Positions 8,403 to 25,993 of a DNA stretch of 64,000 bases are shown here, in pieces (position 1 is the stretch's first letter; each line of letters starts with the position of its first letter). The notes beneath the pieces are model-generated. The model did no database searches, was not told where the DNA came from, and saw only the letters and a list, made by a program, of their open reading frames with translations. This DNA comes from Amoeboaphelidium protococcarum X5. Taxonomy: Eukaryota; Fungi; Aphelidiomycota. The position numbers and the translations under genes were made by a program. Where the stretch lies: the NCBI GenBank assembly GCA_023515725.1, contig JALDTO010000057.1, forward strand, positions 62,001 through 126,000. Direction: 5' to 3'.

Positions 8403-8819
8403 GATAATTTCTAGATTATAATAATATACCAATCTCCTCCTACGGCAGCTGTTAAGTTTTTAAAGTGGAGAAGCGTTGAATGAATGAAGAAATGATGCGA
8501 AAACAGGGCCGATCTCCTGTTCGTGCACTTCAGAAAGTTTTATTTTGTTTTTTTGGTTCACTTGATGATGGTCCGCTTGTTTCACAAGTATTTTGATATG
8601 TTATATAGCGTTACAGTATAAATGATTCTCATTGAAACTAAACTTAAATCGAAATATTCTCTCTAAACCCACGTCTTTTCCTCAACTAATAACTTACCTT
8701 ATTTGATTTTACGCTGCTAAATATCATCGTTGCAATCGCTCAAATTGATGACTTGTCTCGTCACTTTAATGTCACTGATATTGTTCTGATTCTACATCTG
8801 TAGCACTAATTGTCTGATT

Positions 8820-9260
8820 ATGTATCCAAGTCAAAGAACGTGCGCTATCCATTCCTGCAAAGTAAAGATTCTAGACTAGACGATACTTCCGATTGCTATC
8901 CGTGTGTTCAGAGTACATCAGAAACTCTGATATCAATGACGCATCGTGACGTGGTCTGATACGATGGTGTTAGTGATTGAATCATTCCTGTTGAAATGAT
9001 GCAAGTTGACGCGTTACTTCTCTTCTTGATAAGAAATTGCAAGGATTGTGATATTGTTTGATAATAGAAAGTTGCATTTACATCTTTGGGTGCGTCCCTA
9101 TTGAAACTGTCTCAGTCTTGGCGCTGGTCATTCCATATATTGTCGCGATATTATCAGTGCTTGCATCGTAATGTCATAGAGTTGTTTTAAAGGAGAAGTA
9201 ACTTTGGTTCCAGTTGACCTGGCGGAGTAGATTATTTGCTTGCAATGTGTGATGTCTGGG
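8820..9260 (+). pseudogene. Fanzor pseudogene fragments (N-terminus and RuvC-III end; core deleted)
   Basis: ATGTATCCAAGTCAAAGAACGTG vs ATGTAGCCAAGCCAAAAACGTG at 23568; RDIISACIVMSQSCFKGEVTLVPVDLAEQ vs RDNVGSYNVMSRSFSKEEVKLVTANQADQ (13/29 identical, ungapped); frameshifts and TGA stops. Confidence 0.75.
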
Positions 9261-9578
9261 TGCATATCTTGCTGAATAATATCGCGCTAATTGCAATGTT
9301 TGGTCGCTATATCAAGAAGTATTTCCGTTTGCTAATCATTATTGTTGCATCATACTGTGATTATCTTTGCGTTTTATTGGGTAAATGGAAGATGGCTGCC
9401 GTGCTTAGTACTGCTATGGAGGCGCTCATTGGTACTGCAGATGTTGAAAGGCTTATGCAATGAGTTTAAGCATGGTGTCAGACTAAACTGGTCAAGGCCA
9501 AGGTGATGGTGTCCAGTTGTAATATCAGGTTGAGTTATGGGCTTTGTTACGTCATTGGAACAATTTGAAGATTGCAGT

Positions 9579-9663
9579 TGCTACTACGGGGATATGTGGG
9601 TACCCCGATGAAAAGATCGCCGGAGCTTTTTTAAAGTGTACGAGTGATTGCTGAACCCACATG
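9579..9663 (+). ncRNA. Putative Fanzor omegaRNA scaffold, copy A (guide would follow: ATCGTGAAATATCTG...)
   Basis: 73/85 nt identical, ungapped, to 25909-25993; CGGGG/CCCCG hairpin whose loop ATGTGGG can pair with terminal CCCACAT. Confidence 0.65.
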
Positions 9664-10035
9664 ATCGTGAAATATCTGTAAAACACGCGCCATATATTAG
9701 GCATTAATACAGACGTCTGAATGGACCTAAAGAGTAGTGAACATGTGTCGAGATATTCTTTACAAAACTGATGTACGTTGTGGCTGATCTATGTTCTGTA
9801 ACTTGTCAGAACCTTTACAACGAGACATAGCAAAGTTCTAATTTCTCCAGCTGATGTGAGTCACGCCGTTTAGTTTTTACTTAACCGATGACAGTCGCGT
9901 ACAAACGTTTTTTAGTTTATTCGTACGTTGCATTTCATACCACAATCGCACTGTTTAGTTATAATCTGTTCTTTGAAGCAACTTTCTTACATAATAATTA
10001 CTGTCACTGCTGATATCTTTGTCCATTCACCTGGT

Positions 10036-22829: not shown

Positions 22830-23567
22830 TCTTGAATATATATTCTTCTAAAGATTATGTAAAATAAAAACGTGCAAGTAGACTTGGTATTATTTAGAAT
22901 CGCTATTTAGATGAAAAAGGGAGCAGGTGAAGTTTAGGATTTTAGACTGATCGGCTCACTAAGAAAGATTGCCGAGAGATTCAACATGTTCCGCCCGTAA
23001 ATATGCCGACAGACTACCTGCAACAAACACGGTATCCTAGCAACATCATTCTAGTGAATGAAATGACGTTGATAAGCGAAACCCATCAGCATGGCCTCAA
23101 CAGATAGGAATAATTTAATCTATTGGGAGCTGTTTTAAAAGCCGCATTATAATAAGATGACTTCATGGGAATTTCTTCAATATGAACTTTCGAATGAAGC
23201 GAGGCGGGAAAATAGTGGCGGATCAATCATTCGTGCACCAAGTCCTTTTGAAATTTTTTATCCATAAAGTATTTGTATGATAGTTGGTCTTATTTTAAAT
23301 ACGATTATCAATGAGATTCTATATATTTTTACATACTCTTCAATACAAGTCAATAATCTAATTACTCGTTTACTTTATTGCCAATCTTCTGAGCTTGTCT
23401 CAATACCTTAACAATACCAATAACTCCTGAGTGGTTTTAAGCTGCGACCATCCTCATTGATATCACAATGAAATGATGACTGGTCGTGTCACATCTCATC
23501 ATTGCATTGTATTCAATGCTTACTGACAGTGTTCTAATTCTTTCATCGCAATACTGATCATTAGAAA

Positions 23568-25804
23568 ATGTAGCCAAGCCAAAAACGTGAATTATCTGCG
23601 GCTGCAAAGACAGCACTAGAAGATTTCAAAACTTAAGCATATCATCAAGATATTCCCGTATTTCTCTCCGTGTGTGCTAAGGTGATCAATGAGTTGATAT
23701 TCGGATAGTCAAAGAACTTGGCGCATCATCATTTGCCGCATTTGCTCCAGTATTTGCCCCTTGGTATAATACTAAATCTGAATGGTTTGGACATTATGTT
23801 TGGAATGGCAACACAGACGCGTTCAATTAACGACTGTTGTTAAAATGCACTGACAAGGACTGGAAAATACCGTAATCTTAATAAACAGAACACTCCTTAA
23901 CAGCAAAGTTCAATCCTAATTTGAATCGTAAAGACATGGGACAAAACGTAAGTGAGAGCCAGGAGAAGTAAAGTTTTAGTCAGGTGCAGCATTAAATTGA
24001 GAATATCATTGAATCCAAAATGCGGAATCAGTAGATTGCATCAGATACAGACTCTCTAATGGCTAAATGGAAATCTAAGCAGTAATAGTCGTCATCTAAG
24101 AGTTTGAAGAAGAAGAAGAAGAAGAAGAAGAAAGTGCTACAGCTTTCGGAATAATCTCTAGTGGCGTTGGAAAACATGAAACCAAAAATCGGCAAGATGA
24201 AAAATCGGCGAGAGATTGCCGAACTGAATCAGTATGATCAGATACGCTCGATTAATATTCGTATATTCCCTGATAAGAAGTTCATACACAAATTCAATGA
24301 ATGGCTGGATCTCAAGTTTCAAATGGTCAATTTCATCATTAACATTTTGAATGATTCCAGAGATTAAGGAGAAAAGGTGTCAATACAAGCGCTAAGGAAC
24401 CATGTTGCGCTAAGTTAAGTCAAAGCCAAAAAGTGCCGCGTGCCTGATGACGACCCAAGATTGCGTTGGATGCGAATGCCATCTACAGTGCAAGATGAGA
24501 TTATTAATGCGACTCGCACGTATTACTATGCGGCTCATGAGAAGTATACAAAGGGTGATATCAAAGACTACAACTTTATGCCAAATAGAGATGATGATTA
24601 GTTTTAGATGCTCCAGTTTCAAGCGTAAGATGCCCGTGTAGATCCAGATAGCAATCGCGTCCGCCTACTGCCTTCATTCCTCAAGAGCTTTGGGAAACTG
24701 TATGCCAAAGATCCTCTATTCTAAGAGCCTGGCAAGATTGACTACTGGCCCCGTTTCATCAAGTTTGGCTATGGCAGAGGAAGAGAGTTCAAGCTCGTGA
24801 AAAGAAGAAAAAAGTTCTTTGTGATTGTTTCGTATGATGCCTCCTGTATATAAGGTCCATTCACTGATTGGTATTACTAGCAACTGCAAGATATGAATAA
24901 TGCAGATGAGAATCTTGAAGGTGCTAGATCATTTATAAGCCGCCGTGATGCGCGTTGCCGTTAAACTGGAAACACTTGCTCGGTGGATCCAGGTGTTAGA
25001 GTGAGCATGACCGTCTTCGATTTGGATCGCAGGTCATTCATTGCGATTGCGCCTGATTTCAAGTAGCTTTATAAGAATAAGAGTGAATAGATTTCCAATG
25101 CATAGTCTCTGAAAGATTAGATGGATAATCGCGCAGCTGCTTTACAGAATGGACAATTGAGTCTGGAGGAGTTTAAAGCGTAGAAGAAAGAATTATGGCA
25201 CACATGGAAGTAATCAAAGAATAATGTTGTTCCCACTGATATTGGCATTAGTCGTGCTTACACCAAATTCTCTGCATATGTATCGAATTTGCATAACCGA
25301 ATTGGCAACTTTTTGATGCGGCATTATGATCTAATCATTCTTCCCGAGTTTCTGACTATTAAGATGGTGAAGAAACGGAGAAAGCGTTTGAATCTACCTC
25401 CCGTTCTAAGTGATACGGCCGATGTACTGGTAACACACTCGCGTGGTTAATAAAATTCTGGGCATATTCTCCATAAAAATACGCGGAAGACTCTATTGGC
25501 GTTTAGCCATTACAAGTGTCGTATGAAACTTATTGCAATGGCATAAGCTAATATATTTAGATCTGGAAAGTAAGTGCTCGTGACAACGGAGGAGTTTACG
25601 TCGAAACAACATCCGTTTCAGAATGTGCTACATAACTGTCTTGGTGCTGATGAGTACTTCATGTTGGGTGATTTTCGTGCATATCGGGATAATGTTGGAT
25701 CATATAATGTTATGTCTCGAAGTTTTTCTAAGGAAGAAGTGAAATTGGTTACTGCGAACTAAGCGGATTAGACACTATACAAGGAGTTCGTGATGTCCAT
25801 ATGA
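23568..25804 (+). CDS. Fanzor2-like RNA-guided endonuclease (eukaryotic TnpB); apparent frameshift near 23693, in-frame ATG at 23936
   Basis: TGA-free frame 23693-25804 with ~27 TAA/TAG after 23936. Motifs: RSINIRIFPDK; RuvC-I CSVDPGVR (D 24986); LHNRIGNFLMRHYDLIILPEF; FSHYKCR; VTTEEFTSK (25589); RuvC-III RDNVGSYN (D 25688); K9 tract. Confidence 0.88.
24107..24133 (+). repeat. (AAG)8 AAA microsatellite encoding nine lysines in Fanzor (possible NLS)
   Basis: Directly visible, in frame with the Fanzor ORF. Confidence 0.8.
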
Positions 25805-25908
25805 AGGTCTTGCAAGAGACTCTATTGCGCCTTGCTTAACATCTGATCACTAAATCATAGAAGTGTTTTGTAATTGCTTATCGTTATGCTCGTACTATAC
25901 TGTTACTC

Positions 25909-25993
25909 TGCTATTAAGGGGCTATGTGGGGACCCCAATGAAAAGATTGCTGGAGCTTTTTTAAAGTGTACCAATGATCGATTAACCCACATG
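25909..25993 (+). ncRNA. Putative Fanzor omegaRNA scaffold, copy B (guide would follow: TTTCCCGATCCAGAC...)
   Basis: Begins ~105 nt after the Fanzor stop; conserved with 9579-9663; similarity ends abruptly after CCCACATG; hairpin plus pseudoknot potential. Confidence 0.68.

Follow-up and report, generated by a model that had tools for sequence, protein, structure and literature searches.

Ghost loci, which keep the omegaRNA scaffold of a Fanzor element and lack its nuclease gene, are already known, because Saito et al. 2023 reported 134 such Spu-1 loci with conserved scaffolds, found that ghost RNAs support editing and proposed their use in trans (PMC10432273). The Spu-1 ghosts of Spizellomyces punctatus retain both ends and the omegaRNA scaffold without a Fanzor ORF, and they constitute a family of their own, set apart from the coding loci by fixed differences, with many guides and with no transposase inside (PMC10432273). 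In the Fanzor2 and IS607 TnpB RNAs, a pseudoknot reaches the 3′ end and the flanking base is part of the scaffold (PMC11832414, PMC10711439). A homing role has been proposed for TnpB and Fanzor generally (PMC13565253, PMC10530073). Amoeboaphelidium protococcarum has a duplicated genome and two sequenced strains (PMC10608142). A literature search returned no paper whose main text mentions Fanzor together with Amoeboaphelidium, and in the accessible part of the Saito 2023 supplement the Amoeboaphelidium entries are from A. occidentale only (PMC10432273).

Here, we analysed 64,000 nucleotides of A. protococcarum X5 (contig JALDTO010000057.1, positions 62,001 to 126,000, hereafter the window) and describe a ghost element together with a sister element that carries a Fanzor2 gene (Table 1). 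Like the Spu-1 ghosts, the element has both ends homologous to a Fanzor-coding element and no Fanzor ORF, and its omegaRNA region and ends are conserved, the right strongly and the left moderately, while its guides vary. Spu-1 belongs to Fanzor1 and has 30-nt terminal inverted repeats, a CATA TAM, no pseudoknot, a length of about 550 nt and 134 copies (PMC10432273), whereas the present ghost belongs to the Fanzor2/IS607 lineage and has a pseudoknotted 85-nt scaffold, offset imperfect inverted repeats, a length of 1.16 kb with gene remnants, and about 18 loci. What is new is a ghost family in the Fanzor2/IS607 lineage, a selection signal measured with the left end as internal control, and odd left junctions without a detectable transposase. 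We regard the ghost not as a host gene but as a selfish passenger, for which a chytrid fungus already provides a precedent, and its scaffold is most likely kept so that it can borrow the cutter of the sister element, as judged from the comparisons below.

Table 1. Features of the ghost element and its sister element in the window.
Feature	Position	Strand	Description
Target-site motif AAAACA-G (consensus RAAAWW-G), candidate TAM	8500..8506	+	Single G in the empty site; found at each junction when filled
Ghost element, family A	8506..9663	+	1157 bp plus shared G; non-autonomous, IS607-derived Fanzor2 transposon; at least 13 two-ended copies; empty sites
Ghost left end	8506..8536	+	Begins GG; carries imperfect inverted repeat of the right end; aligned to the reverse complement of 9621-9663
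Decayed 5′ non-coding block of ghost	8565..8819	+	Homologue of 23277-23567, by sequence comparison
Fanzor N-terminus remnant in ghost	8820..8900	+	6/20 aa identical to the start at 23568
RuvC-III and C-terminus remnant, plus 3′ untranslated stretch, in ghost	9144..9364	+	13/29 aa identical (9144-9230 vs 25685-25771)
Ghost-specific spacer	9365..9578	+	Approximately 215 nt, without counterpart in families B and C; among fetched loci, found in ghost copies only
OmegaRNA scaffold of ghost	9579..9663	+	P1 9587-9607; pseudoknot 9594-9600 with 9656-9662; linker TGAAAAG; P2 9615-9649; terminal G
Predicted guide	9664..9683	+	Host DNA flanking the ghost right end; differs at every copy; assigned from TnpB/Fanzor architecture (PMC10432273, PMC10711439)
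Sister element, family B	23217..25993	+	2777 bp; 2-nt GT duplication; one of 23 full-length copies; candidate nuclease source family
Fanzor2 gene (TAA/TAG = Gln code)	23568..25804	+	745 aa in intact copies; DPG, TTEE and RDN motifs; zinc-finger cysteines lost
Family B omegaRNA scaffold and right end	25909..25993	+	Repeat match to ghost scaffold

Self-comparison of the window returned a single significant internal repeat, the ungapped 85-nt match between 9579-9663 and 25909-25993 (73/85, 85.9%, E 2e-21), which ends at 9663/25993 as the preliminary description of this DNA had reported; relaxed scoring added 8685-8862 and 9143-9358 at 62-64%. The same description had read 8482-9683 as colinear with the locus at 23.2-26.0 kb, and the 5′ and 3′ blocks confirmed this: 8565-8900 aligned with 23277-23668 (233/401 columns, score 155 vs a maximum of 80.5 in 100 shuffles) and 9141-9364 with 25682-25909 (143/231 columns, score 135 vs 63 in 100 shuffles). 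Taken alone, the left-end block and the middle block each scored no higher than the maximum of 100 shuffles. No match above shuffle was obtained between approximately 9365-9578 and the 23.2-26.0 kb locus. The N-terminal and RuvC-III remnants that had been pointed out were both recovered, and RuvC-I, RuvC-II and most of the Fanzor gene are deleted from the ghost.

The two loci belong to two distinct multi-copy families. With about 58-62% nucleotide identity in alignable blocks, the idea that the ghost descends by decay from the 23-26 kb locus was rejected. The ghost family contains 10 uninterrupted copies of about 1.16 kb each and three further two-ended copies that carry a Helitron2 insert, an insert of an element with an 8-bp duplication, and a deletion, respectively; there are also two 5′-truncated copies and fragments. 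Pairwise identity between copies is 81-98%, with some copies at 95-98%, which indicates a family that is old yet was mobile recently. The longest ATG-started ORF in any copy spans 75-150 aa, and none exceeds 150 aa. The remnant is nearer to family B than to a third family, C, and a search for an intact Fanzor gene with a ghost-type scaffold found none. Within the ghost interior, 8934-9061 and 9364-9491 are 92-93% conserved across copies, above the remaining interior, and might be promoter elements or the product of recent conversion. The inserts are elements in their own right: a Helitron2-like element of 7.5 kb that has terminal hairpins and long open ORFs lies at C207 ~35.8-43.3 kb, and a hAT-like element of 2 kb, whose terminal inverted repeats are GC-rich and which is accompanied by an 8-bp duplication, lies at C214 ~206.0-208.0 kb.

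Family B comprises 23 full-length copies that are mostly 97-100% identical and thus young. The locus at 23.6-25.8 kb reads as one long ORF when TAA/TAG are taken as Gln; the copy in the window is frameshifted by 1 nt missing near 23691, and an ORF of 728-758 aa with the DPG, TTEE and RDN motifs is intact in ten B copies. Family C has one intact copy of 738 aa, 49% identical to B, and the same locus is occupied in the other strain. The ten intact copies show the Fanzor2 active-site signature, namely DPG, a Glu shifted to just before the zinc-finger motif, and RD; the zinc-finger cysteines (C4), present in most relatives, are absent from the B and C proteins, so nuclease activity is not certain. 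Pfam, NCBIfam and Rfam recognised neither protein nor RNA, with no match of PF07282 in the C protein and none in Rfam to the ghost scaffold. The modelled partner protein had its best Foldseek match in 9b0l (mimivirus Fanzor2, E 6e-11), and a profile search also matched 9b0l (E 2e-17); judged from these best structural and profile matches, the protein appears closer to Fanzor2/IS607 TnpB than to Fanzor1. It resembles its best match ApmFz2 in the DPG and shifted-Glu active site (PMC10711439, PMC11832414) and differs in the lost zinc-finger cysteines, a length of about 745 aa and a scaffold much shorter than the 205 nt of ApmFz2. All 14 named members listed for the family B protein cluster are from this strain, ghost-like sequence occurs in other samples too, and the family B burst is younger than the ghost family.

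Several further observations concern these families. Homologous Fanzor2 proteins occur in Tilletia spp. (smut fungi) and Borealophlyctis (chytrid), and the Tilletia protein also lacks the zinc-finger cysteines. The first 120 aa of the B and C proteins (window 23568-23935) align with an alternative frame of a relative's IS607 tnpA that overlaps its Fanzor gene, and an APVF-x-x-W motif ahead of an M-x-x-NVSE start is common to the B/C N-termini and this alternative frame (pairwise E ~0.02-0.2). Homologues from the aphelid, smuts and metagenomes retain the overprinted frame, although the tnpA frame itself is dead. From these weak pairwise alignments it is possible that the Fanzor2 N-terminal domain was born from an overlapping frame. 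An intact 743-aa B element with a ghost-type left end lies at C142:714946-717719 and reflects either an end swap between families or an ancestral B end. One and the same B insertion on two contigs (C233:101446, C207:599768) with flanks 99% identical may be a segmental duplicate, an allele or a long conversion tract. A public environmental sample (JGI 3300048833) contains a 1.8-kb contig 99.3% identical to family B, and a Crypton-like tyrosine recombinase ORF (~680 aa) lies in the omegaRNA region of a dead family-C-like remnant (C154 ~269.3-271.9 kb) and is missing from the duplicate chromosome.

A comparison with orthologous loci, as the preliminary description had suggested, revealed empty sites. 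The duplicate chromosome (C249) joins the ghost flanks without the element, and in another sample of the same species both haplotypes are empty at the ghost site, one of them joining 8505 to 9663 over a single shared G. The site is thus empty in three of the four haplotypes seen, with no fixed orthologous locus bearing a conserved guide among them, which indicates a polymorphic insertion and excludes a fixed domesticated locus. The B site (23217-25993) likewise lacks the element on C249 and, in the other strain, on both contigs, one of which gives a 19/19 match to the predicted guide, and empty counterparts were also found for family C and two further copies. At the homologous site of the ghost on C249 (C249:646624; window 8500-9671), a 14-nt deletion removes the target motif and the first guide bases; absent from both haplotypes of the other sample, it is possibly an excision footprint, an escape from cutting, or chance. 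A cleavage scar at the empty B site was considered and rejected, as the other strain shows the same mismatch cluster. In that strain, two copies of the sterol-isomerase (EBP) gene that neighbours the B site flank a 5.5-kb block of other genes, and the empty target is duplicated as well.

The proposal that the 85-nt block represents a Fanzor omegaRNA scaffold, with a guide specific to each locus behind it, was supported. The 38 distinct right flanks share prefixes no more than expected by chance across 703 flank pairs; this exactly chance-like sharing led us to reject guide-directed choice of new sites. Targeting of tRNA genes, a candidate prompted by the tRNA-Val at 10035, was rejected as well, with one tRNA among 60 other loci. 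The target search that the preliminary description had called for was carried out on the aphelid genome and gave no excess: 22 matches to motif plus ghost guide, one being the locus itself, vs 34 in the control. On this analysis, the guide of the ghost would simply consist of the DNA next to it, and the site of this element in its empty state would be the natural target.

The preliminary description had seen no terminal inverted repeats, which proved wrong: both families have imperfect subterminal inverted repeats. In each family the repeat lies flush with the left terminus but is set back by 5 nt from the right terminus, and both ends change together; such an offset arrangement at unequal distances from the ends is a feature of IS607 (PMC6188088). 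Across 38 junctions of the three families, the target motif has A/G at -6 (37/38), A at -5 (34), -4 (34) and -3 (32), and A/T at -2 (33) and -1 (35); its G was fixed by the junction alignment procedure. The right junction is exact in all copies but one. At the left junction the target is repeated by 1 nt in 19 copies, 2 nt in 9, 3-4 nt in 3 and 6-10 nt in 6, the short classes being ambiguous within G runs. In six copies, 6-10 nt of the copy's own right flank replace the first left-end bases at short microhomology, and one possible source of this long class would be incomplete repair of a Fanzor-cut empty site. The elements share with IS607/Fanzor2 the pseudoknot to the last scaffold bases, the terminal G in the scaffold and the imperfect inverted repeat at unequal end distances (PMC6188088, PMC10711439, PMC11832414), and close relatives of the partner protein carry a TnpA overlapping the gene. 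They differ in having no TnpA, in a target of RAAAWW-G, where any base follows the G, instead of GG, and in duplications of 1-10 nt instead of none; because classical IS607 makes no duplication, either the mobiliser or the repair is different here.

The scaffold is under real constraint in the ghosts. Among 13 ghosts its mean pairwise identity was 96.7%, vs 81-93% in other 85-nt windows, and 9/85 of its columns were variable vs 418/1044 in the interior (Fisher p 9e-9) and 37/100 directly upstream, where p-values are indicative because the copies are related. The scaffold is therefore better conserved than neighbouring non-coding DNA, which is the comparison on which the preliminary description had staked its own refutation. 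The most serious alternative, which we nevertheless think unlikely, is that conservation of the 85 nt reflects only their role as the DNA right end in transposition, as a binding array or a single-strand hairpin with transfer starting at the right end, and that the ghost has inherited the RNA fold but makes no further use of it. The 3′ part of the scaffold is indeed also the right-end inverted repeat, which co-varies between both ends in each family; IS607 TnpA covers subterminal repeats (PMC6188088), one-ended, 3′-precise movement is known for other Fanzor elements (PMC3627910), and with right junctions exact and left ones fuzzy a stronger constraint on the right end alone is conceivable. However, the constraint also covers P1 with the pseudoknot loop, a part that lies 50-85 nt from the end and beyond the inverted repeat and in which only 4/36 columns vary (p 3.5e-4, again indicative), and it ends where the homology between families A and B ends. 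Moreover, the left end, which transposition needs too, drifts, with 12/25 columns of this DNA-only end variable among ghosts, and ghost variants at paired sites are mostly wobble-preserving.

The predicted fold has two stems, P1 and the long P2, connected by a TGAAAAG linker, and a 7-bp pseudoknot that pairs the P1 loop with the bases just ahead of the terminal G. Paired cells reached 91.7% vs 34-48% in slid controls, with six pairs changed on both sides, and all 91/91 pseudoknot cells pair across the 13 ghost sequences. After a one-column re-registration of family C, every pseudoknot pair is kept and 3/7 switch identity relative to A/B, and four P2 pairs show compensatory change between A/B and C; as a point against RNA use by the ghost, this covariation lies mostly between families, may predate the loss of the ghost gene, and draws on three families with few independent events. 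Minimum-energy folding without the pseudoknot was no better than shuffles (z -1.2) and not significant for A or B, which also counts against it, and a scaffold covariance model found nothing in the loci of distant relatives. A broken B copy that is 6.4% diverged shows 0/85 scaffold differences, and in dead family-C remnants that did not spread the scaffold has decayed (33 to 10 bits vs 106). We consider it improbable that the scaffold is uniform through gene conversion or recent common ancestry of right ends instead of function. Ghosts do look mosaic near the right end, and the B copy at C142:714946 suggests that exchange between ends can happen, but about 10 fixed scaffold differences persist between A and B, several of them compensatory and including an A-U/C-G swap in P1, and variability jumps directly upstream of the scaffold. 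The preliminary description had named gene conversion as a possible cause of the conservation; conversion from the sister family was rejected on these fixed differences.

The mobiliser was sought in the elements and the genome. Four queries found no IS607 TnpA (serine recombinase) in either; the tnpA frame is dead in B and C and intact in a relative's locus, and metagenomic relatives of the protein have an IS607 TnpA overlapping the Fanzor gene. By inspection only, the Crypton (C154:269-272 kb) and the Helitron2 (within a ghost at C207:34.7-43.4 kb) were rejected as mobilisers, their ends being unlike the present ends. Among known elements, Fanzor2* in cut-and-paste transposons of Chloropicon and molluscs (PMC10711439) similarly has no TnpA, degenerate inverted repeats, target duplications and a duplication base inside the scaffold; here, by contrast, duplication length is variable, the right end lies 5 nt past the repeat and no partner DDE transposase was identified. 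The Fanzor1 elements CRe-1/2/3 and MCi-2 (Bao and Jurka 2013, PMC3627910) share precise 3′ ends, fuzzy 5′ ends and variable duplications in non-autonomous elements; unlike ours, they are Helitron2-derived or unclassified, with 7-19 bp duplications after TTTT, and the present ends do not resemble this genome's Helitron2. It is conceivable, with little probability, that the elements spread without a transposase: the Fanzor RNP would open RAAAWWG sites unguided, the right end would be joined exactly and the left end finished by host end-joining, and ghosts would need the scaffold for mobilisation. The 1-10 nt duplications and microhomology joints could reflect such end-joining, and the very recent bursts without a TnpA leave room for it; it is weakened because an undetected, lost or virus-supplied transposase is simpler and because the inverted repeats co-evolve like transposase binding sites. 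Host domestication, raised in the preliminary description, as a guide gene aiming Fanzor at foreign or host targets is highly improbable. In its favour, no transposase was found in the genome and family C keeps an intact gene at one locus in both strains. Against it, the ghost insertion is missing from the duplicate chromosome and both haplotypes of another sample, each copy's guide is different and random, genomic matches to the guide fall below the control, and the family has transposon ends and recent mobility.

The reading that we favour, and hold to be probable, is that Fanzor protein from another element takes up the ghost RNA in trans and is directed by it to the empty site of the ghost itself, which would let the ghost freeload on homing. 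The ghost would have arisen by internal deletion from an IS607-type Fanzor2 element and would be moved passively by a transposase supplied in trans. Transcription through the right end into host DNA would yield an omegaRNA made of the scaffold and a guide of about 15-20 nt, which Fanzor2 from the intact B copies, or from the single C copy, may load. The loaded nuclease would cut the empty site (RAAAWWG plus flank) after excision or on an empty allele, and repair from the filled copy would restore or spread the ghost. Since this benefit would be limited to ghosts with a loadable scaffold, the scaffold would stay selected while the gene rots. This reading is favoured by the multi-copy families, sharp ends, empty sites, scaffold constraint, pseudoknot pairing and compensatory changes, by the unchanged scaffold of the broken B copy and the decayed ones of non-spreading C remnants, and by the six long left junctions, which incomplete repair of a cut empty site could leave. 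Use in trans is further supported by a partner protein that is predicted to fold like the mimivirus Fanzor2, whose RNA has the same 3′ pseudoknot (PMC11832414), and by the S. punctatus ghost omegaRNAs, which work with their protein (PMC10432273). Against it, the right end has a second function as an end of the DNA element, and subterminal motifs are where IS607 transposases bind (PMC6188088); a search of RNA sequencing runs recovered none that contains the locus; the zinc-finger cysteines are missing; and family B is only a candidate for the long-term partner, given its younger burst, the strain-specific B proteins among those listed and the ghost-like sequence in other samples.

The earlier suggestion of one nuclease family serving many guide loci in trans is plausible in light of this analysis, and a host-domesticated guide repertoire is not demonstrated by this genome. 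The A. protococcarum elements extend ghost loci from Fanzor1 to the pseudoknotted Fanzor2/IS607 lineage and offer a ready test set of ten intact nuclease genes, three scaffold variants found in nature, which at 85-88 nt are compact for a Fanzor2, together with naturally empty sites and a TAM predicted to be A-rich. For the natural role of Fanzor in eukaryotes, these families contribute population evidence that the scaffold is selected in a protein-less family while the left end and interior drift, which is what use in trans for self-homing would predict.
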